A DNA stretch of 64,000 nucleotides from the sequence record NC_070956.1; one strand, 5' to 3'. Shown here piece by piece: positions 2,497 through 54,666 of this stretch (positions are counted from its first letter, which is position 1; each line of letters starts with the position of its first letter). Below the pieces are notes generated by a model. That model worked only from the letters and a program-made list of their open reading frames with translations, was not told the origin of the DNA and ran no database searches. Both the position numbers and the translations under genes were made by a program.

Positions 2497-3383
2497 AAGT
2501 TCACCTCTTTCAATACTGCTTGGGCACGGTACATAATTTCCGTAGTTTCAGAAACGTCATTGATGAGGGACATCACTGCCCCTTCAATCTCCGCACCGGT
2601 CATCGGGGTCAGCAACATAATGCTGATCATGTTCTTGATGTATTCCACCGGATTGTTCAGCATCATCTCGCCTACTTCAGCAGCAAACAAGTTCATGTAG
2701 ATATCCAGTTGTTGTTGGACACCACCGCCATCAACTATGTGACGTTCACCAATGGTTCCTTTAAGAAACGCTTTGTTGGCTACCAGACGTTTCTTAAAGA
2801 AGGGTTCCATGTACTGGTCATCATCCGTACTCAGAATGTTCAAACCAATCAACATACCTTTGGTAACATCGACGGAAACATCCTTGATAACGTACGGTAG
2901 TTTTTCTTGGTCCATCAACGGATCAACCAAAGCCATAACTTGGATGAAACGTTCCTTCGGATCGATACCCTCGTCTTCCAGCACATCTGATAAACCCAGG
3001 ATGTCTTCTATACCGTCGACGGTATAGATGGTATCGAGGATCTTTGTCAGGATAACCAACTCGTCAGGACCAATGTAGTCCATGTCGATCATGATCCCCA
3101 TTGCTTGGAGGCAATCTACCAAAGCGTAAATGAGTATCTTACGTACTGCCTGAATGGTATCAGGAGTATCGTATCCTTCATCGATCAAAACGGTCGTGAT
3201 GTTAGTGTCCAGGAAACCATTATTTCCACCCGGAACACATTCCAGGGATAGCGTAATTAAGTTGTACGCATCCTGTAATTGTATAGCCGCTTCAGGTGTA
3301 CACCTGACCGCGAAGTCATCCCACATTTCGCCAAGATTATCACTGGCAAGGTTAGCGTTAGTGAGATCAATCATATCTGACAT
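2487..3383 (-). CDS. Putative virion protein (phiKZ gp79-like by synteny)
   Basis: 298-aa acidic ORF overlapping the RNAP gene start; AAAGGA RBS. Confidence 0.65.
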   Translation of the reverse strand: MSDMIDLTNANLASDNLGEMWDDFAVRCTPEAAIQLQDAYNLITLSLECVPGGNNGFLDTNITTVLIDEGYDTPDTIQAVRKILIYALVDCLQAMGIMIDMDYIGPDELVILTKILDTIYTVDGIEDILGLSDVLEDEGIDPKERFIQVMALVDPLMDQEKLPYVIKDVSVDVTKGMLIGLNILSTDDDQYMEPFFKKRLVANKAFLKGTIGERHIVDGGGVQQQLDIYMNLFAAEVGEMMLNNPVEYIKNMISIMLLTPMTGAEIEGAVMSLINDVSETTEIMYRAQAVLKEVNLCQ

Positions 3384-3425
3384 AATCTTGTCCTTTCAAC
3401 TGTAAGTTCATAATGGAGTCATAAC

Positions 3426-4094
3426 ATGTCTAATAAGGTTCAACTTAAAGCAGCACGGAAGCGTGCCGAACGTAAAGTAGCCTCCAGCCGTAAAAACGGT
3501 CGTCGTCGTCTCGCTATCCATCAGAGTGTTCCTCAACTCATGGAAGCCGCCAAGAGCCAGATCGAACTCGCCCTGGAACGTCACCAGCTGGAGAGTCCTT
3601 TCGACATCGCCCGTCGAAGCGATGGTAGTGAAGTCCCTGCCATGGATAAGGGTGCTATGATTCAAGGTTGCCGCAAGTCCACCACCGAAGTTTTCCGGAT
3701 GTTCAGCTACCTGGCCGCAGCCAAGTCCCTGGTCGATCAGGGTCGCATCGAATTCGAATTCAAACTGGACCTGGATCAGTGCGCTGCTGATATCGCTGCT
3801 CTGGATCGTCGCGTTATCCGTCTGAACGTTCTGGTAGAAGGTGAAGATGACGTCTTCGGTTACGAACTCATGGATATCGGTTCTACTCTGGAGAACCTGG
3901 GTTCTGTCATCTATGATGAAGTCTCTCGTCTTGAGCCGCAAGCTCTGGTCCTCGACAGCTACATCAATCATGCCGCCCAACAAGTCGTCGCCGATCCTGA
4001 AAATGAGATCGCTGACCTCAAGCAGGCCAACCAAACCGTACTCCAATCTCTGGCGTACACTCTGATCAAACCCCACATGGTAAATAAAGCTTAA
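3426..4094 (+). CDS. Hypothetical protein with strongly basic N-terminus
   Basis: 222-aa ORF, GGAG RBS, phage-like codon bias; 12 K/R in first 28 aa. Confidence 0.8.
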   Translation: MSNKVQLKAARKRAERKVASSRKNGRRRLAIHQSVPQLMEAAKSQIELALERHQLESPFDIARRSDGSEVPAMDKGAMIQGCRKSTTEVFRMFSYLAAAKSLVDQGRIEFEFKLDLDQCAADIAALDRRVIRLNVLVEGEDDVFGYELMDIGSTLENLGSVIYDEVSRLEPQALVLDSYINHAAQQVVADPENEIADLKQANQTVLQSLAYTLIKPHMVNKA

Positions 4095-4105
4095 GGAGCT
4101 TTTGA

Positions 4106-5701
4106 ATGTCTGATCAAGAAAAACCCATCGACGTACTGCGTGCGGCAGTTCTTCTCGGTAAGCCGGACACTATTGGGTTCGGCATCCCCATCTTTACTGG
4201 CGGACTCAAAGAGCAGCACCGTGTGATCCTGGAAGCAGCTCAACTCTTCTATGCCATCCGTGAGCTCGAAAGCGAGATGGAAAAGAATGGTCGCACCGAC
4301 CAGACCACACTGAACTCCCTCCGTGTTCGTTACACCGAACACACTGAGGAACACTTCCAGGGTGTAAGTGAGAAACAACTGGCAGAGATGCTGGTGAACT
4401 ATTTCACTTTCTACCGACGGACTCTCGATCGCATCCAGATGCGCGATGATGTCACCACCGAGCGCCAACACAAACCCAATGCTAACGTGGTGACTACTCA
4501 ACGTGGTCCTATCGGGATCATTAACAGCATCAAACCCGGTAAGCTCGGGAATCTGTCCATGAAGGACAGGATGCGGAAGAACTTCGCCAAATCCTCCGGT
4601 AGTGTGGACGGCTTCTCGATCATGCTGATGAACAGCCGGGTCTTCCTGAAGATCAAACTCCCCACTCCCATGGACCTTCTGTTGTTGATGAACAAGATCG
4701 CCAACAAACTCTCTGGGTTTGGTAAGCGTGTTCGCGCATCATCCCTGGAGCTGGAGCGTGCACTGATCGTTCGTGAAGTTGTCGAGTTCGTTATCGAGAT
4801 GGCGACCTACTGGAGTGTCTCTGACATCCTGGATGCTCGCGAACTGCTCAACGTGATCAAGGAAAGCGATGCCAACCACCTGGCTGTAGCAATCCTTGCA
4901 GCTTCTGCACCCAAAGGTCTGAACTACCGTATGAGCTGCCTGGCTCACAAGTGTAACTTCAGCGATGACGTTCTGATCGACGCGGCCAACATGGTTCACT
5001 TCGACAACGAACGTTACCCGGCGAAGTACATGGAACAGGTCCAGATGATCTTGAACACCGGTCACAAGTTCTCCATCCAGGAACTGCATGATTCCGATGT
5101 TCCCTTCATCGATACCGACGGGACCGAGATCGAGACACGGTTCACCATGAACGATGGTTCCGTGAGCATCGAGCTCAAAGAACCGTACCTCGCAGATTAC
5201 TTCGAGTGTTTCGATAACGCCGCCGCTCGTATCAACCCTCAACTCCGTCAACTGGCTGTCCAGTTCTCTGAACCTGAGCGCTACAAGCGCGAGTACCAGA
5301 GCTACATGGGCAGTATCCGGACCAACAACTACACGCAGTGGGTAGATAAGATCATCTTCCACGTAGCTGCCGGTGAAGAAGGTGAAGACGAAGTAATGTC
5401 CCGCGGGGATAACCCGAAAGAGTTCGACGAAGGTCTGATCGACTGTCTGGGTAGTCAAGAAGAACTCGCCGGTATCTTGCTGGAGCGTGTCATCAAAGTC
5501 ATTCCCCGCCTGTCCTACACCAGCGTAGGGATTCTGTCAACAGAGTGCCCTCAGTGCAAACAAACCACTGACGAAGAAGTTACCAAGGTCCATGGTGGTT
5601 ACACCCCCATCGATCCGTTCCTGACTTTTTTCGACCACACCCAAATGTTGATAGAACTGCGGAGGGAGCTGGCGATTACACAAGAGGAGCTTCTTTCCTA
5701 G
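4106..5701 (+). CDS. Conserved phiKZ-like protein (gp77-like), candidate tail/baseplate assembly chaperone, unshifted product
   Basis: 531 aa, AAGGAG RBS, two Cys pairs (CLAHKC, CPQCK), slippery T-TTT-TTC at 5626-5632 near the C-terminus. Confidence 0.7.
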   Translation: MSDQEKPIDVLRAAVLLGKPDTIGFGIPIFTGGLKEQHRVILEAAQLFYAIRELESEMEKNGRTDQTTLNSLRVRYTEHTEEHFQGVSEKQLAEMLVNYFTFYRRTLDRIQMRDDVTTERQHKPNANVVTTQRGPIGIINSIKPGKLGNLSMKDRMRKNFAKSSGSVDGFSIMLMNSRVFLKIKLPTPMDLLLLMNKIANKLSGFGKRVRASSLELERALIVREVVEFVIEMATYWSVSDILDARELLNVIKESDANHLAVAILAASAPKGLNYRMSCLAHKCNFSDDVLIDAANMVHFDNERYPAKYMEQVQMILNTGHKFSIQELHDSDVPFIDTDGTEIETRFTMNDGSVSIELKEPYLADYFECFDNAAARINPQLRQLAVQFSEPERYKREYQSYMGSIRTNNYTQWVDKIIFHVAAGEEGEDEVMSRGDNPKEFDEGLIDCLGSQEELAGILLERVIKVIPRLSYTSVGILSTECPQCKQTTDEEVTKVHGGYTPIDPFLTFFDHTQMLIELRRELAITQEELLS

Positions 5702-6147
5702 AACTGCCGGGTTCACTCTCTCAATTCCAGAAGGCAGAGGAAGTAGCCATCCGTGAGTTCATAGCACTACAAGAATTAGAAGGGCTCGAAACAAGAGCCC
5801 TTTATAAGAAAGAGTTGAAGATATTCATGAAATCCAGAGGTTGGATAAGTGAACGCGATTCTTTCTCTATTCTGTTGTGTTATAACCGTTCTCTAAGAGA
5901 GTACACACACAGATGGTCACCCGGCTCTTTTGGTGAAATGTTTGGGTATCGTGAGTACTCTGAGATCATACCGCTTAAAGAGTTTCTTACAACCCCAATG
6001 GCGGTGGTCGAGGATATTTTGGAAGGTGTCGGTAAAGGCCGCACCGATATTAAGAAGGCGAAGGACGCAGCACGGTCTGCCGACGAAAAACGTAAGGAAG
6101 ATCCTGCAAGCATTCTTCAACGAGAACTTAATAAACTCAAGGGGTAA
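5629..6147 (+). CDS. -1 frame extension of the 4106 gene (predicted programmed frameshift; fused product 680 aa)
   Basis: -1 frame open 5572-6147; first TTG at 5815 and first ATG at 5827, neither with a good SD; reads FRPHPNVDRT...ELNKLKG. Confidence 0.7.
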   Translation, partial: FRPHPNVDRTAEGAGDYTRGASFLELPGSLSQFQKAEEVAIREFIALQELEGLETRALYKKELKIFMKSRGWISERDSFSILLCYNRSLREYTHRWSPGSFGEMFGYREYSEIIPLKEFLTTPMAVVEDILEGVGKGRTDIKKAKDAARSADEKRKEDPASILQRELNKLKG

Positions 6148-6152
6148 TTTAA

Positions 6153-6698
6153 ATGGGTAAGTATATTCCGCCTGTTACCGAGCAACGCGACTCCGCTGTT
6201 GTTCTCCAGGGCGAGAAAGAAAAGAACATGGACACCTCCGTTGGTGTCCCTACCGAAGTTCGTCCGACCACACCGGTCGAAATCTACAAAGATAAGATCG
6301 ACGAATTTGTCGGTTTCCTCAAACACGAGAACAACGCCGGTCAGCCCGAAATCCGTGCTAAGTATCAGGTTGGTGTTATCACCATGTTCGATCTGATCCT
6401 GGGAATGGATTACAACGAGATGGAAGAAGTGATCGACCACCTGGTCATTACTATTGGTAAGCACCCGCACGTCTTCACCAACAGTAACACCCTGGCGCCG
6501 CTCTACGCAGTCGAGAACCGCAAGTTGCTCGTAGCAGCGTCCATCCAGCGCTACAAGTGGTTCATGACCTTCTTCATCGGTCTGTCGAACAACATTCGTC
6601 AGCGTGCGCAGTATGTCGAAGGTTACGACATTACTCGGTTCATTTCTATGTTCCCTGTTAAGGCTCGTGAGAACCTCCACAACTACATCTATCGTTAA
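6153..6698 (+). CDS. Hypothetical protein (181 aa)
   Basis: ORF with AAGGGG RBS, strong codon bias, followed by hairpin. Confidence 0.8.
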   Translation: MGKYIPPVTEQRDSAVVLQGEKEKNMDTSVGVPTEVRPTTPVEIYKDKIDEFVGFLKHENNAGQPEIRAKYQVGVITMFDLILGMDYNEMEEVIDHLVITIGKHPHVFTNSNTLAPLYAVENRKLLVAASIQRYKWFMTFFIGLSNNIRQRAQYVEGYDITRFISMFPVKARENLHNYIYR

Positions 6699-6712
6699 TT
6701 CGATGTAAAGAT

Positions 6713-9114: not shown

Positions 9115-9137
9115 TACACCCATAACTTATTTTTTTT

Positions 9138-10880
9138 TTATGCCGCTTCTTTCTGTTTCTGCTCTTCAATGAATGGCATCACTCGGCTTGCATAGAAGTC
9201 GTTTGCTTCAACCAAACTAGGCATGCCGAAGATTGTTGTGCACAGGGTGTTCGCATTAGCTATCGGACTACTGGCATAGTTAACACCGAGTCGTCTGTAA
9301 TCCAAGCGATCAAGACCTTGTACTTCGCAAACCTCCAGCTTAGTGGTCTTGTTAGACACGTTAAGCGCAACGGTAACGTGAGGGTACGCACCAGTTACGT
9401 CAATGTCGTCCGTGGAACCACGCCCCATTGATTTCCAGTCCTGGAGACCGGTATACAACGCTCTGCCATTGGCTTCGTTGAGTTCAGCATGAAGCAACGC
9501 AATCCAGTCACGAAGATCTGGCTTAAGTTCTTTGAACGGATCCTCTTTACGACGACCAACAGTTCCCCAAACATAACCATTTTGTTTTGCAATGAATGAC
9601 AGTTTGTCAGAGATCATTGACGGTTGGGATTGATAGGAACGAAGCTCAGAAGAAGTAACCAGAGACGGTAACGACAGTGAGTAATCGTTAGTTGCTCGGT
9701 TAAGATCTTCGATAGTCCAGTTATCTCGGATGTTGTACATCGCGTACAGATACGGTTCATGTTTGAGCATCCATTTGTGCCACTCAGCAGAACCAGCCTG
9801 GAGATGCGAACCTTTCTCCGTATACAACTTACCTTCGATGCCTTCTGATTCAGCTGTGAACTGAAGGCTGTACGATTCACGTTTACCACCAGGGGCACGT
9901 TTAATAGCATAGAACGACATGCCATCGAACCACTGCCACTTAGCAGGTGCTTGAACCACAGGGAACTTCTCGTGGTTATCCAACGGTGACTTAGAACCAT
10001 CTACCTTCGTCTTAAACTGCCGACCAGGATAATAAAGATAATCTTGGTAAGCACGTGGACAATCAGGGTCAGAGTAAGTCATCGCCAGGTCGTAACCTTC
10101 ATTCAACAAAGCTTCCTGGTTCGCTTCCATATCAAAGTTAGCGTTCCATGAAACAATGAAGTCAGGCCCTACCTTGTGCCACCACTGAATGTTGTTGTAA
10201 ACAATCACCCCAGGACGATCGGCCAACTCATAAACGATTTCAACGTTATGTTTGTCGATATACTCTTGGAGATATTGCTTCTCGTACAACTTCAAATTCT
10301 TCATGATGGTTTCGTCATCATGACCGTGGAATATCTCACGGAGACCACACCAGTAAACCTTATTCTTGATGGTGGTAGATGCCATGTTGATTGGACCGGT
10401 ACTACCGTCATCCAGAATGAAGGTCTCCACGTCATACGCGGCTACTGAGTACGCTTCTTGCGGTTGGTGATCTGGGTACTTATCGAAGAACTTCTGCTTG
10501 AAGATAACCGGAACAGTTTCCTGACATCCAAATACGAATGGGTTATTCTTCAACATGGTGATGTCAGCTTTACGGTCAGGACGACCATGCAACACTTTAC
10601 TGATGTTGACATGAAGTCGTGCTGCGTTAGAACTGAACTTGTCACACTTCTTGATTTCGATGTAGTCTCGGTTATCCTTGAAGGTCCGATAGTTGGGTTT
10701 CACCACATAGAAATCAGTTTTGTAATCTTCCAAGAAGACGAGACGATCAGTACGTCCACCCTCTTCGTCGATCTCAGTAATCTTGGCTGTCAGAAGGTCA
10801 TGGTCCGGGTCATTCTTGTGATAGCTCAAATACGCGTGTTTGCAAACACGAGCAATTACTTTTGGTTTCGTGGTTAGCAT
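9138..10880 (-). CDS. Split family-B DNA polymerase, 3'-5' exonuclease-containing subunit (phiKZ gp82-like)
   Basis: ExoI YDVET, ExoII SWNANFD, ExoIII YNIRD, plus motif-A-like DIDVTGAYP; no further polymerase motifs recognised. Confidence 0.75.
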   Translation of the reverse strand: MLTTKPKVIARVCKHAYLSYHKNDPDHDLLTAKITEIDEEGGRTDRLVFLEDYKTDFYVVKPNYRTFKDNRDYIEIKKCDKFSSNAARLHVNISKVLHGRPDRKADITMLKNNPFVFGCQETVPVIFKQKFFDKYPDHQPQEAYSVAAYDVETFILDDGSTGPINMASTTIKNKVYWCGLREIFHGHDDETIMKNLKLYEKQYLQEYIDKHNVEIVYELADRPGVIVYNNIQWWHKVGPDFIVSWNANFDMEANQEALLNEGYDLAMTYSDPDCPRAYQDYLYYPGRQFKTKVDGSKSPLDNHEKFPVVQAPAKWQWFDGMSFYAIKRAPGGKRESYSLQFTAESEGIEGKLYTEKGSHLQAGSAEWHKWMLKHEPYLYAMYNIRDNWTIEDLNRATNDYSLSLPSLVTSSELRSYQSQPSMISDKLSFIAKQNGYVWGTVGRRKEDPFKELKPDLRDWIALLHAELNEANGRALYTGLQDWKSMGRGSTDDIDVTGAYPHVTVALNVSNKTTKLEVCEVQGLDRLDYRRLGVNYASSPIANANTLCTTIFGMPSLVEANDFYASRVMPFIEEQKQKEAA

Positions 10881-10996
10881 TGTTACACTCTCTACTTAAT
10901 CTAATTATAAGACCTCGAATGTTATGACGTCTTAAGAAATGGGGTTCGCTAAACTATAGCTTCCTCACTGTTTATTTACTCCGGAGCAAAACAGTT

Positions 10997-12352
10997 ATGA
11001 TTGGTATTGACTTCATCAGACCCCGGGCCGATTTCGGACCCATGGGGTTTAGTGGTTTGGAATTTTTGGACAAACAAACTGACACAGTATTTCGTCAGCT
11101 CGTTACCATGTTCCAGACCATGATCAAACAAGATCAGCACGGTCAAAACGTCCTGGATTGGGACAACGCAGACCGTCAGGAAATCAGCGATTATCTTCTC
11201 GACGCAACCGGGATGAAGATCATTATGATGGATGGTACCAACACCGTTGGTAACGCCGCTATCGAAGCAGGGTACTTCTCTCCCAACAACCTGATCAACA
11301 GCACCGAGGTTGACAAGTGGTTGGATGTGAAACACACCAACGTTGCACAGGCACTCCGTACACTCAAGGTTGACGTGATGTCCGGTTGGATCGACACTTC
11401 TACTGGTAAGGTCGGCGGTGACCTCAGTAAGATCGAATTCAAACTCTACATCCAGTCCTACCTGGACATGTTCCTCGTTCAAAAGCGTTTCGCTAAATGG
11501 GGTGCCAACTTCCCCGAACTGCTGGCTTCCATTGTTCTCCATGAAATGGGTCATGCTTGGACGGCGATGGTCTACGCTTTCCAAACCTGTTTCGACTCTT
11601 TGTTCCCGATTGCTGCGGTTCGACTGGCGATGAACGCTAAGGGTGAACGCGAGAAAGTAACGATCATCAAAGAAGCAAAGGCAGCTCTGGAGATCCCTGA
11701 GAACCTCACGGACAAAGATCTCGAAGTAATGGCCGATCCCGAAGGTCTGACACTCTACTTCAAGAAAGCCATCGAAACCCGCAACCTCCGTCGTACACTG
11801 TCTCTGGGTGTCAGTGCTCGTAATGCTGAAAGCTTCGCTGACATTTACGCTGTTCGGATGGGCGCCAGTAAAGAACTGGTGATCGCACTCGCTTCTCTTC
11901 CAAACGCTGTCCCGATGTGGGTCCCGACTTGGTTCATGGTAGCTGCCGTGCTTGGTTCCATGGTGGGGTCTCCTTTCATTGTCGGTTACGCCGGCACCAT
12001 GGCTGTGTTGATGACCCTGGTCTCCTTGGCGGAATCTCTTCGCCCTGGTGAGACTTACGACACTCCGTATCGTCGTATAAAGGCAATCCTTCGTGAGATG
12101 GTTGCTGAATTCCAGAATTCCAAGCACCTCTCCAACAATGACAAACGTCGTCTGTTGAATCAGTGCAAAGACATGGCCAAACTGATCGAAGATCAGAAAC
12201 CCATGCTGGAAGGTACTGCCGTTCAACGCATGGTAGGTTGGATCTTCTCTGGTTCTGACTTCAAGGCTCAGGACTTCGAACACTACACCCACGAAATCAT
12301 GTCCCACAATCTCAGTCTCTACGAAGACTTCTTCAAATCCGATAAGGAGTAA
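10997..12352 (+). CDS. Putative virion head protein with zincin HExxH motif and TM segment (gp84-like)
   Basis: VLHEMGHAW, AESFADIYAVRMG, hydrophobic WFMVAAVLGSMVGSPFIVGYAGTMAVLMTLV, N-terminal SGLE site. Confidence 0.65.
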   Translation: MIGIDFIRPRADFGPMGFSGLEFLDKQTDTVFRQLVTMFQTMIKQDQHGQNVLDWDNADRQEISDYLLDATGMKIIMMDGTNTVGNAAIEAGYFSPNNLINSTEVDKWLDVKHTNVAQALRTLKVDVMSGWIDTSTGKVGGDLSKIEFKLYIQSYLDMFLVQKRFAKWGANFPELLASIVLHEMGHAWTAMVYAFQTCFDSLFPIAAVRLAMNAKGEREKVTIIKEAKAALEIPENLTDKDLEVMADPEGLTLYFKKAIETRNLRRTLSLGVSARNAESFADIYAVRMGASKELVIALASLPNAVPMWVPTWFMVAAVLGSMVGSPFIVGYAGTMAVLMTLVSLAESLRPGETYDTPYRRIKAILREMVAEFQNSKHLSNNDKRRLLNQCKDMAKLIEDQKPMLEGTAVQRMVGWIFSGSDFKAQDFEHYTHEIMSHNLSLYEDFFKSDKE

Positions 12353-36408: not shown

Positions 36409-36530
36409 TACTTTGTACAGTACGTGTGCATTAACTTCCATGCTATATGTATGTTAATGTTATGCGTAGAAACCTTAACGCAAACAAATATATTTGTTTT
36501 CGCTTCCAATGATCAAGGAATATTTGAACT

Positions 36531-38699
36531 ATGAGTATTGCATTCACCACTCGTGGCGGCCAATCCGGTGCCGCACTGAAGGCCATCATCAACAACGTGT
36601 CCGGTATGACCATGGGTCAGGATGACGTCTGGGCCGGCATCGCTGGTACCGAATCCCTGAGCACTGCCGTCAAAGCCCAACTGCCCGAAGTCGGTTTCAA
36701 CCAGAAATCCGCCATGGGCTCCGTTGTTGACTCCATCAATGATGGTTCCTTCAACCAGCGTCTGAGCCAGATGGCTCAGGAAGTTCGGAACATGAACGGT
36801 TTCGAAACCTTCTCCCATTCCCTGGAACAAGGCGATGCTGCTCGTCAGAAAGCTGCAACCATCGACCTGAACGCCCGTGCCAACCGTCAGTGGGCCGGTG
36901 CCGAAGCTCTGTACAAGACCGTCGTGGTTGGTTACAAAGAAGAAGGTATCTCCCTGCCGATCGACGTTGCCGGTGTTGGCGCTTACAACACTTCCGGTAA
37001 CATGAACGAGTCCTGGGAAGATCTGCGTCCGATCGCTTCCGTTCTGGCTGACTCCAAGTTCAACCCGGGCGACGACCTGAAGCTGGTTCCGGTACTGCCG
37101 GAAGATCCGAAGAACGCCAACGCTGCTGCCTTCGTCGATCCGACCGTGTGGACTCCGTGGGACGTCGTGTACGACACCAACGATCTGCTGCGCCGTGAAG
37201 CGCACAAGACCAACTACCTGAAGCCCAGCAAGATTCAGAACCTCCTGAACCTGTGCCGTGCCCCGGGTGCTACTCCGTTCGAGCAGAACGACGAGATCGA
37301 ATCCAACTCCATCCGTCTGGAAGACGTCCTGGTCACCCTGAAGACCGCCGGCGGCGAAGACGTGCTGAACCTGCACACCGGTAACATGAGTGGCAACACC
37401 ATGCGTCCGAGCAACAGCACCACCTCCGACGAGAAGCGTCAGATGTCCTTCATCATCACCGGTGAGAACATCAAGAACTTCCTCGACAAGGACGAGAAAC
37501 CGACCGAACTGTTCAAGGGCCTGACCGATCTGGGTTACAGCGTACACCTGGGCTTCGACATCGTCGCCACCTATCAGCGTGCTACCAAAGCCTGGACCCC
37601 GACCATCAGCGGCGTGAGCATCGCTTACCTGATCAGCAAAGACGGCGAGAAAGTCATCCCGGGCACTCCTGGTATGCCGGAAGCCACCCAAGCTCTGATC
37701 GACGCTCTGAAGTTCGAAGGTGACATCACCGGTCTGCACATGACCATGAACCACAACAACGTCAACCGTAGCCGTTACGGTACCACCGTTGTTTACGGTA
37801 CTGTCAACAAGTTCTACAACGTTCAACGCCGTACTCCGATTTCCGTCAAGTACCCGATGAACGATCAGGACAACAACGCTGACATCCTGGCCCGCCTGGT
37901 CAAAGACATGAACACCATGGTCACCCGCAACATGACCCATGATGCGTTCAAGGCTGCCAACAAGCACTTCGACTACGTCTACGCCAACCACGGTGCCAAG
38001 ATCGTCAACATCAACGACGATTCCAGCGCTGTTATGCCGGGTCAGCACTTCCTGACCACTACCGGTATCAAGGGTAGCATGGACCTGATCAAGGAAGTTT
38101 CCACTCTGGACTCCAAAGACACTCGCGAGAACATCTCCGAAGCTCTGGTATCCAAGCTGTGGGACGTCATCACCGCGATGCGCGTTTCTTCCAACACCGC
38201 AGCCCTGAAAGAGCTGGACGGCCGTGACGAGAGCTACACCGTTGTTGCTCACTCCTCCCTGGCTCCGTTCCTGCTGACCCAAGGTGACTACCGTACCTTC
38301 GGTGCGAACATCAAGTTCAACATCGTAGAAACCAACGTCGACTCCGAAATCGGTCGTATGTGGGTGGTTCCGACCTCCCTGACTACCGACAACGAAATCG
38401 ACCTGTTCGGTGGTATCGGCATCTGTGTCGCCAAGGACCTGCTGGTTGTTGAAGGTCAGGTACAACAGTCCGACCGTCAGTACCGCATGATCATCACCCA
38501 GCCTGCCTACCAGCACCACAGCCTGTGCCCGGTCATCGGTCTGGTTGAAGTTGCCGACATGGACAAGCTCCTGGGCGACGAAGGTCTGATCACTGCCGTG
38601 AACAAGCACCTGGCCAAGATCAGTGGTTCCATCGAAACCACCGGCACTGGCACTGGTACTACTACCGGTAAAGAACTGCCGATCGTTAAAGTACCGTAA
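36531..38699 (+). CDS. Major capsid protein (phiKZ gp120-like)
   Basis: 722 aa, strongest codon bias in the window, G-x-E sites at E41 and E92, strong UUCG terminator after it, helicase-MCP-RNAP synteny. Confidence 0.85.
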   Translation: MSIAFTTRGGQSGAALKAIINNVSGMTMGQDDVWAGIAGTESLSTAVKAQLPEVGFNQKSAMGSVVDSINDGSFNQRLSQMAQEVRNMNGFETFSHSLEQGDAARQKAATIDLNARANRQWAGAEALYKTVVVGYKEEGISLPIDVAGVGAYNTSGNMNESWEDLRPIASVLADSKFNPGDDLKLVPVLPEDPKNANAAAFVDPTVWTPWDVVYDTNDLLRREAHKTNYLKPSKIQNLLNLCRAPGATPFEQNDEIESNSIRLEDVLVTLKTAGGEDVLNLHTGNMSGNTMRPSNSTTSDEKRQMSFIITGENIKNFLDKDEKPTELFKGLTDLGYSVHLGFDIVATYQRATKAWTPTISGVSIAYLISKDGEKVIPGTPGMPEATQALIDALKFEGDITGLHMTMNHNNVNRSRYGTTVVYGTVNKFYNVQRRTPISVKYPMNDQDNNADILARLVKDMNTMVTRNMTHDAFKAANKHFDYVYANHGAKIVNINDDSSAVMPGQHFLTTTGIKGSMDLIKEVSTLDSKDTRENISEALVSKLWDVITAMRVSSNTAALKELDGRDESYTVVAHSSLAPFLLTQGDYRTFGANIKFNIVETNVDSEIGRMWVVPTSLTTDNEIDLFGGIGICVAKDLLVVEGQVQQSDRQYRMIITQPAYQHHSLCPVIGLVEVADMDKLLGDEGLITAVNKHLAKISGSIETTGTGTGTTTGKELPIVKVP

Positions 38700-54213: not shown

Positions 54214-54666
54214 TTATTTTTTCTTGACGTAGTCCTTGTTAAACTCGTCGATGATCTTATTAATGTTAATAATGAGCTGATCAATGGTACTCCTGAGGGC
54301 ATTGATCGTTTCTGCGTCATTATCCAACTCTTTGGTTGTGGCAATAAGTATCAGTCGGGTCGAATTGTAACAAGCGTCTTTGGCAACAGTTTTGGTGCAG
54401 TCGTTTTGACTCAAGAATTGACCGAGCTGCTCCATCCTTGCTTGTTTAGGTTTCCATCCAGGGGAGTAAACCTCAGCAGGAATGAGAGTCAGGTCATCCT
54501 TCATTAACTGCAACTGATCTTTATAAAGCTGGAGCTTTGCCAGTTCCGTCTTCATCTCCACGTACGTGCCCGCTGCGGTTACTTTGGGCTGTGAGACGCA
54601 ACTGGTCATTATAAAGATCATCGAGAGGACTATTGCCATCCGACTCACTATATCCGTAAGTTTCAT
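54214..54666 (-). CDS. o-spanin (outer-membrane lipoprotein), 150 aa
   Basis: AAGGA RBS then MKLTDIVSRMAIVLSMIFIMTS-C signal peptide with lipobox-like Cys; start lies inside the upstream gene. Confidence 0.7.
   Translation of the reverse strand: MKLTDIVSRMAIVLSMIFIMTSCVSQPKVTAAGTYVEMKTELAKLQLYKDQLQLMKDDLTLIPAEVYSPGWKPKQARMEQLGQFLSQNDCTKTVAKDACYNSTRLILIATTKELDNDAETINALRSTIDQLIININKIIDEFNKDYVKKK

Follow-up and report, generated by a model that had tools for sequence, protein, structure and literature searches.

A conserved slippery heptamer and a predicted −1 frameshift in a core gene of the Chimalliviridae

The genes for λ G/GT and Escherichia coli dnaX are generally known to yield two proteins each by a −1 ribosomal frameshift. 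In λ, the shift takes place close to where the first open reading frame (ORF) ends, at an X_XXY_YYZ heptamer, and adds a new C-terminal domain to a small share of the chains, so that a rare long form accompanies an abundant short protein; this layout is kept while the sequence diverges, is overlooked by automatic annotation, and was reportedly described as a conserved frameshift of the tail assembly chaperones of tailed phages by Xu, Hendrix and Duda in 2004. The dnaX gene is essential and non-structural, and its −1 shift on a homopolymeric heptamer gives two products, τ and γ, with different C termini in a set ratio. The HIV-1 gag-pol site, U_UUU_UUA, is followed by a stimulatory stem–loop and is read by eukaryotic ribosomes. 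Here we report a comparative analysis of a locus in a 64,000-nucleotide (nt) stretch of sequence record NC_070956.1 (hereafter referred to as the window), in which a heptamer of the HIV-1 class, T_TTT_TTC, lies near the 3′ end of the gene at positions 4106–5701, the ortholog of phiKZ gp077, which is Chimalliviridae core gene cg18 and is listed as hypothetical in the core-genome table of Prichard et al. 2023. A first-pass annotation, made from the letters of the window, had proposed that a −1 shift at this heptamer produces isoforms of 531 and 680 amino acids (aa), and had filed them as G/GT-like tail assembly chaperones. The comparison of relatives strongly supports the two isoforms, and recoding at the T run very probably yields the long one.

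The locus shares with G/GT the phase of the heptamer, its place late in the first ORF, the new C-terminal domain of the long form, a layout that outlasts sequence divergence and neglect by automatic annotation. With dnaX it shares the homopolymeric heptamer, the non-structural gene, the two C termini and, as proposed here, a set ratio. The rarity of the long form, a known property of GT, is suggested here by mass spectrometry (MS) of phiKZ-infected cells. The likeness to dnaX is incomplete: the shifted dnaX frame stops at once to give a shorter product, whereas the shifted cg18 product is longer. The mechanism is canonical. Novelty lies in the gene family, in the conservation of the site throughout the Chimalliviridae within a core gene of a much-studied group of phages, and in the correction of its annotation. 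A search of the literature on frameshifting together with phiKZ, Chimalliviridae or nucleus-forming phages found no description of the site.

We propose that the gene at 4106–5701 and the ORF annotated at 5827–6147 are one recoded gene. Most ribosomes would end in the 0 frame at 5701 and release the 531-aa protein. In a minority, the two Phe-tRNAs on TTT TTC (5627–5632) would slip back by one base, by tandem slippage on T_TTT_TTC, and the slipped ribosomes would read the −1 frame from 5632 to 6147, exchanging the last 22 residues for a 171-residue extension in which a flexible linker leads to a helical domain and this to a charged tail (509 + 171 = 680 aa). Because both C termini appear to be under selection, both isoforms are probably functional and would be needed in a set ratio, as are λ G/GT or dnaX τ/γ. 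We assign a probability of roughly 0.75 to ribosomal −1 frameshifting as the mode of this recoding. The features of the locus are as follows.

4106–5701, plus strand: 0-frame ORF LAh10_4, the short isoform (531 aa), orthologous to phiKZ gp077; PHROG 4585, expect value (E) 4e-74
5626–5632, plus strand: slippery heptamer T_TTT_TTC in X_XXY_YYZ phase, with TTT (codon 508) in the ribosomal peptidyl (P) site and TTC (codon 509) in the aminoacyl (A) site
5632–5701, plus strand: dual-coding overlap, in which the 0 frame has its last 22 sense codons and its stop, and the −1 frame its first 23 codons
5632–6147, plus strand: whole −1 segment after the proposed shift, 171 codons and a stop, encoding a ~28-residue disordered linker, an all-helical domain and a charged tail
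5661–5697, plus strand: 10-base-pair (bp) stem, not conserved, no more stable than chance and probably not a stimulator
5702–5826, plus strand: annotated 'intergenic gap', read as coding in the −1 frame from synonymous substitutions, their proportions and the structural model, with two predicted helices of the C-terminal domain
5827–6147, plus strand: LAh10_5 (106 aa), annotated as a gene of its own and taken here to be the C-terminal portion of the long isoform; PHROG 19747

Conservation of the slippery site

Positions 4000–6700 of the window are 100% identical, at the same coordinates, to Aeromonas phage LAh10 (MK838116.1; genus Ludhianavirus; 260,310-bp genome), to which phages D3, D6 and D9 are 98% identical over this range. 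In the LAh10 record, LAh10_4 (4106–5701) and LAh10_5 (5827–6147, hypothetical) are kept separate, with a 125-nt gap between them. The two reading frames were analysed apart in all searches and models. The 0 frame around the site reads CTG ACT TTT TTC GAC, with TTC as codon 509 of 531, which bears out the heptamer and the phase given in the first-pass annotation. Its further reading also held: the −1 frame runs without a stop from 5572 to 6147, and contains its first TTG at 5815 and its first ATG, which lacks a good Shine–Dalgarno (SD) sequence, at 5827. The motif TTTTTTY is rare in the window (four loci with nine overlapping matches versus ~28 expected), and the heptamer at 5626 is the only instance inside a plus-strand ORF. 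The other T runs in the window (at least six T followed by a pyrimidine) lie only at 1173–1181, 9130–9139 and 54217–54223; the first two, of 9–10 T, are intergenic and adjoin the 5′ ends of the minus-strand ORFs 1183–2496 and 9138–10880, and such runs are about three-fold depleted across the 64 kb.

The homologous loci reach far beyond this genus. The upstream protein matched 128 phage records by tblastn, and its PhiPA3 ortholog, used as the query, matched 211. We took 32 further loci from 33 GenBank records, which include that of LAh10, and from three metagenomic contigs; the loci span Ludhianavirus, Ferozepurvirus, Chaoshanvirus, Petsuvirus/OBP, N1M2, Kc263, AH04, EL, RisingSun, Miami, pTD1, FishSpeaker, PhiPA3, Noxifer, LucasX, phiKZ, 201phi2-1, Goslar, an SPN3US-like phage, Ea35-70 and RSL2. 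Both elements that the first-pass annotation had read in a single genome recur: all 32 relatives carry an in-phase N_TTT_TTY (in Kc263, T_TTT_TTA, exactly the HIV-1 heptamer) 28–76 nt before the 0-frame stop, and in all 32 the downstream ORF lies in the −1 frame, which stays free of stops from a point ahead of the T run until the ORF ends, with a −1 piece of 154–180 codons in every relative. The site is T_TTT_TTY or T_TTT_TTA in 30 of the 32 and G_TTT_TTY in two (PhiPA3 and Noxifer), and the T run measures 5–8 T, with 5–6 T in most genomes. This holds among relatives whose upstream protein identity to LAh10 falls to 17–25%. The 0-frame stop is placed at a fixed 70 nt throughout the OBP/Ludhianavirus clade, and the 0-frame tail, of 8–24 sense codons, differs in length between clades.

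Furthermore, the heptamer is conserved at synonymous positions beyond the requirement of the protein, and against codon bias. Although the codon before the T run may encode T, N, S, A, I, L or V, its last base is T in 27 of 29 non-redundant genomes. All 29 have TTT as the P-site codon, whereas TTT makes up 183 of the 614 other Phe codons (30%) in the same genes, only 2 of 22 in LAh10 and none of 18 in RSL2. In the 17 genomes of the OBP/Ludhianavirus clade, the wobble columns of the heptamer have an entropy of 0 bits, as compared with 1.6–1.9 bits just upstream.

None of the 33 GenBank records contains a joined coding sequence, and all of them split the locus into two ORFs, as the first-pass annotation had expected of automated annotation. 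In phiKZ the layout consists of PHIKZ077, a 218-nt 'gap' and the 80-aa PHIKZ076.4. The annotated starts of the downstream ORF disagree among the records, with products of 69–153 aa and gaps that range from an overlap with the upstream stop to 236 nt; examples are D3 and D9 (positions 3439–3648 of loci L002 and L003) and PHIKZ076.4 of phiKZ (3321–3563 of locus L028).

A HMMER search with the −1 piece against 1.84 billion representative proteins returned 26 hits, all of 74–172 aa, with no single-ORF fusion among them; one hit, P0021, is a gene call that begins at the T run itself, and the sequence of P0021 indicates a preceding codon of TGT type. A second word-indexed protein search, made with the family alignment, yielded nine proteins, all of them already matched in the first. 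Two matches in BFVD are 686–687 aa long, and the 686-aa one, a phiEaH2 protein, is, like the 655-aa SPFM17 protein, probably a member of the SPN3US-like clade with a longer N terminus.

Coding in the −1 frame

Between the slip site and the end of the downstream ORF (5241 codons, 31 genomes), the −1 frame contains no stop, whereas the 0 frame contains 275 and the +1 frame 517. The gap before the annotated downstream gene evolves as coding sequence in this frame. All five substitutions within it between LAh10 and D3/D9 (5715, 5730, 5739, 5781 and 5817) fall on third positions and are synonymous in the −1 frame; one of them makes the TTG at 5815 a TTA in D3 and D9, so that this codon is no conserved start. 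Nei–Gojobori counts in the −1 frame, for the stretch that separates the 0-frame stop from the first ATG, gave proportions of synonymous and non-synonymous differences (pS/pN) of 0.60/0.08, 0.70/0.20, 0.35/0.13 and 0.56/0.20 in four pairs, comparable to those of the annotated ORF; pS greatly exceeded pN in 8 of 11 pairs of relatives, and the ratio of non-synonymous to synonymous substitution rates (dN/dS) was 0.07–0.61 where computable. When the −1 peptide beginning at 5632 was used as a tblastn query, it aligned from residue 1 and in one piece in 33 of 34 matching records, with 30–38% identity in the distant ones, and in every case checked its match begins 67 nt before the upstream match ends.

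In the overlap, the constraints of two frames are superimposed. Synonymous change in the −1 frame is depressed (pS 0–0.27), the periodicity of the 0 frame is lost, and the two readings are equally conserved (mean pairwise identity 0.50 and 0.52). Conserved blocks alternate with fully variable triplets that match −1 codons, and in these triplets the third position of the 0 frame is invariant while the first two vary. Just 5′ of the 0-frame stop, AGAGGA-NNN-TCTTTCYTAR (5683–5700) is nearly invariant in 17 genomes. We explain this conservation by protein constraint in both frames, and the element may also act on ribosomes as an SD-like pause element. A reading of AGAGGA (5683–5688) as an internal ribosome-binding site was rejected, because no start codon follows it in any clade member and the variable columns track −1 codons.

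The same region bears on whether the downstream ORF is instead a separate gene, translated from a non-canonical or lineage-specific start within the gap or the overlap, with the T run being a conserved Phe-Phe and no more. Two ORFs are what all 33 records annotate, an ATG or GTG does occur 8–48 nt past the upstream stop in some relatives, and PHIKZ076.4 has been detected as a protein. However, no start position is conserved, the first NTG lying 24–255 nt past the site across genomes, with 61 start-less open codons after the site in LAh10 and 85 in phiKZ; conservation of the −1 peptide reaches back as far as the heptamer, and its motifs keep to the boundaries of −1 codons; the wobble bases at the site do not vary, in spite of codon bias; the 5827 ATG has a poor SD context; and the conserved AGAGGA has no start codon after it. 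We therefore regard two independent genes as very unlikely. The stop counts, the pS/pN values of the gap, the constraint on the overlap and the wandering starts, taken together, argue that the heptamer, or a point very close to it, is where translation passes into the −1 frame, and that both C termini matter.

Mode and frequency of the proposed shift

The dnaX site has an upstream SD-like element and a downstream hairpin, and the HIV-1 site a stem–loop, whereas nothing comparable was found for cg18. In LAh10, the minimum-free-energy fold of the 70 nt past the heptamer does contain the 10-bp stem described in the first-pass annotation (5661–5670 with 5688–5697, including four G–U pairs). The doubt expressed there about its role as a stimulator proved justified, in that the fold is no better than those of shuffled sequences (z = +0.35 to +0.36) and the stem is not conserved. 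Goslar is the sole outlier: the 70 nt past its T_TTT_TTT (3159–3228 of locus L030) fold with −25.1 kcal/mol (z −3.4), which may represent a lineage-specific stimulator. Since no conserved RNA structure follows the site, the slip seems to rest on the heptamer alone. Separately, positions 5780–5802, inside the −1-coding gap, contain a hairpin of 8 perfectly paired bp around a 7-nt loop, with no T run after it on the plus strand; the change at 5781 in D9 preserves the pair (A–U to G–U).

A homopolymer without an RNA stimulator raises the question of transcriptional slippage, the main rival reading, in which the phage RNA polymerase would add one U in the T run at 5626–5631 in some of the transcripts, and normal reading of these would give the same long protein. 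This would fit the 5–8 T at the site in every relative, the invariant preceding T, which makes the run longer, and the depletion of T runs in the window, as expected if they are hazardous; moreover, chimalliviruses use unusual multisubunit polymerases of their own, whose slippage could differ. Yet 5–6 T are short for known bacterial polymerases, which usually need 8–9 or more, and Kc263 retains T_TTT_TTA. In 32 of 32 relatives the run is placed such that the 0 frame reads TTT and TTY as complete codons, as is canonical for ribosomal slippage, although this is indecisive as the Phe-Phe dipeptide is itself conserved. On this evidence we consider transcriptional slippage unlikely and favour slippage of the ribosome.

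Published data bear on how often the shift would occur. In the Grad-seq proteomics of phiKZ-infected PAO1, with 10, 20 and 30 min pooled, PHIKZ077 has a log10 abundance of 10.7 and peaks in fractions 3–5, and PHIKZ076.4, annotated with 80 aa, has a log10 abundance of 9.08 and peaks in fractions 4–6, alongside RNA polymerase subunits (PMC10914614, Suppl. Table 1). From these values, the MS abundance of PHIKZ076.4 is 2.4% of that of PHIKZ077. Its sedimentation is too deep for a free 9-kDa protein, and the pattern fits a minor long isoform without proving it. A ratio of ~2% is within the range known for GT. A source-data table of the same study gives both genes similarly low values in two series of six columns.

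The shift might instead be near-obligatory, with the long protein as the main or sole functional product and the 0-frame tail as a by-product. The −1 extension is indeed longer than the tail and forms a folded domain in the model, and the tail varies in length between clades (8–24 sense codons). But the tail is as conserved as the −1 reading, its stop is fixed at 70 nt in the OBP/Ludhianavirus clade, no fusion of the frames appeared among the representative proteins, and the PHIKZ076.4 signal is ~2% of that of PHIKZ077; nor would T_TTT_TTY without a stimulator be expected to be highly efficient. We hold a near-obligatory shift to be highly improbable, and retain the reading in which a minority of ribosomes shift.

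Several points weigh against ribosomal frameshifting by a minority of ribosomes. The products of expectations, with genomes treated as independent, are 1e-16.4 for the preceding T and 1e-13.5 for the P-site TTT, but kinship among the genomes inflates them, and a conservative ten-lineage estimate is 5.5e-6. G_TTT_TTY in PhiPA3 and Noxifer re-pairs less perfectly in the P site, and, as the Phe-Phe dipeptide is conserved, conservation of the phase incompletely separates ribosomal from transcriptional slippage. No conserved structure was found past the site (consensus −1.2 kcal/mol with no covariation; mean z 0.02 in 28 genomes), no SD-like element was seen upstream, and, given these missing stimulators, the efficiency of the shift may be low. 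OBP, AH04, SXP01, pTD1 and RSL2 have an ATG or GTG shortly past the 0-frame stop, where separate initiation is possible. Finally, what the sequences themselves show is the in-phase site, the open frame, the conservation of both, the coding signature of the gap and the constraint of two frames on the overlap; the shift itself, its ribosomal mode, its inefficiency and the role of the protein are inferred.

Identity of the protein and meaning for the family

The gene is orthologous to phiKZ gp077, 201phi2-1 gp136, EL gp47, PhiPA3 gp074 and Goslar gp081, as traced by a tblastn chain from LAh10 through OBP, EL, Miami and PhiPA3 to phiKZ and by notes in the PhiPA3 record. Around it lie a DNA polymerase gene, a 181-aa ORF and homologs of three phiKZ genes, gp078, gp079 and gp080, the last of which encodes a virion RNA polymerase subunit; the synteny with the gp078–gp080 homologs is kept. 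In one phage only, a gene for an HNH homing endonuclease (AerS_266; 4109–4497 of locus L006) stands just 3′ of the conserved block. Many genes of the window are accompanied by an antisense ORF of near-equal length, as at 3408–4076 (minus) and 3426–4094 (plus), 10976–12307 (minus) and 10997–12352 (plus), and 36513–38609 (minus) and 36531–38699 (plus); these antisense ORFs are probably a by-product of codon usage and not real genes.

Four cysteines of the upstream protein, Cys278, Cys283, Cys481 and Cys484, are invariant across the family in a 22-sequence alignment and in a second alignment, and form a probable zinc site.

4937–4954, plus strand: codons of Cys278 and Cys283, the first half of the four-Cys site, in invariant columns of the two family alignments
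5546–5557, plus strand: codons of Cys481 and Cys484 (CPxC), the second half of the four-Cys site, in invariant columns

Pfam, NCBIfam and PHROG searches with the upstream protein and the −1 piece gave only two PHROGs of unknown function (4585 and 19747). In Pfam, 22 family members had no match at E ≤ 0.1 and 10 core domains none even at E ≤ 10, and sequence searches of the PDB, with single proteins and with profiles, gave none. The record name 'putative ZipA-like cell division protein' is unsupported, with no Pfam, NCBIfam or PDB sequence match behind it; the ZipA-like product name is repeated in the RisingSun, Joad and ZPAH34 records.

AlphaFold models the upstream protein as an α/β core with a low-confidence C-terminal tail (mean predicted local distance difference test score (pLDDT) 66; predicted template modelling score (pTM) 0.61). 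The −1 piece is modelled as ~28 disordered residues followed by a single all-helical domain (mean pLDDT 76), whose first two helices (H29–49 and H54–68) are encoded in the 'gap'. Foldseek found no significant match for either model in the PDB, and weak matches there (CMG/replisome and human GINS chains; E ~2–5, template modelling (TM) score ~0.2) were discarded as noise. In BFVD, the upstream model matched family members first, followed by models annotated as 'Baseplate hub assembly protein, bacteriophage T4-like', 'Baseplate hub subunit' and 'Baseplate protein', with E of 7e-5 to 4e-3, probability ≥ 0.98 and TM scores to the target of 0.33–0.55, at a query pLDDT of only 66; a 'tail assembly chaperone' match had E = 1.3.

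T4 gp26 and gp51 are baseplate hub assembly chaperones (Leiman et al. 2010, PMC3004832). The first-pass annotation had mentioned both, and this remark gained an unexpected lead: the predicted fold of cg18 matches BFVD models of T4-like hub assembly or hub subunit proteins, but no match was found at the sequence level, in Pfam or PHROG baseplate families. That cg18 encodes a hub assembly chaperone of the T4 gp26 type is accordingly a tentative lead from modelled folds and no finding. A chaperone of this kind that leaves the particle would be consistent with published virion data, because the record of 201phi2-1 gp136 lacks the note 'identified using mass spectrometry' that its neighbours carry, and gp81/82 go unnamed in the text of the Goslar virion-structure preprint. 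Against a hub role, gp26 is half as large as the cg18 protein, the gene lies among polymerase genes, and the evidence points to early expression, the homolog in Churi having been detected 15 min after infection and classed as non-structural (PMC11849849). Gene 077 is not among the top hits tabulated in an antisense oligonucleotide (ASO) screen.

The assignment to G/GT-like tail assembly chaperones is not established, and we do not class the gene with them. λ G has ~100–150 aa, whereas the cg18 protein has 531 aa and a four-Cys site; its gene has polymerase neighbours and does not lie between tube and tape-measure genes; no chaperone family in Pfam, NCBIfam or PHROG matches its sequence; and the Churi homolog is seen early and listed as non-structural.

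We judge it somewhat likely that, in every member of the Chimalliviridae, cg18 encodes an obligatory two-isoform protein made by −1 frameshifting and missed in more than 200 genome annotations, with a fixed short-to-long ratio as part of a conserved step of the life cycle. Should the lead from the fold prove right, the protein would be a hub or tail assembly factor that follows the logic of G/GT with unrelated ancestry; otherwise, it would be an early non-structural factor that gains a helical domain.

The phiKZ-like phages are a main model of phage cell biology, including the phage nucleus, the PhuZ spindle and protein import, and are candidates for therapy, and most of their ~70 core genes have no assigned function. 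If the recoding is real, the annotation of a core gene would be corrected in every member, and the phiKZ gap and the 80-aa PHIKZ076.4 would become part of a protein of ~690 aa. This previously unseen protein species would enter studies of interaction, localisation and knock-down, in which reagents directed at gp077 would reach both isoforms and those directed at the downstream ORF only the long one. The site would also provide a natural probe of frameshifting on host ribosomes, which these phages are known to modify, and would extend the principle of G/GT, an isoform ratio fixed by slippage, to another protein family.

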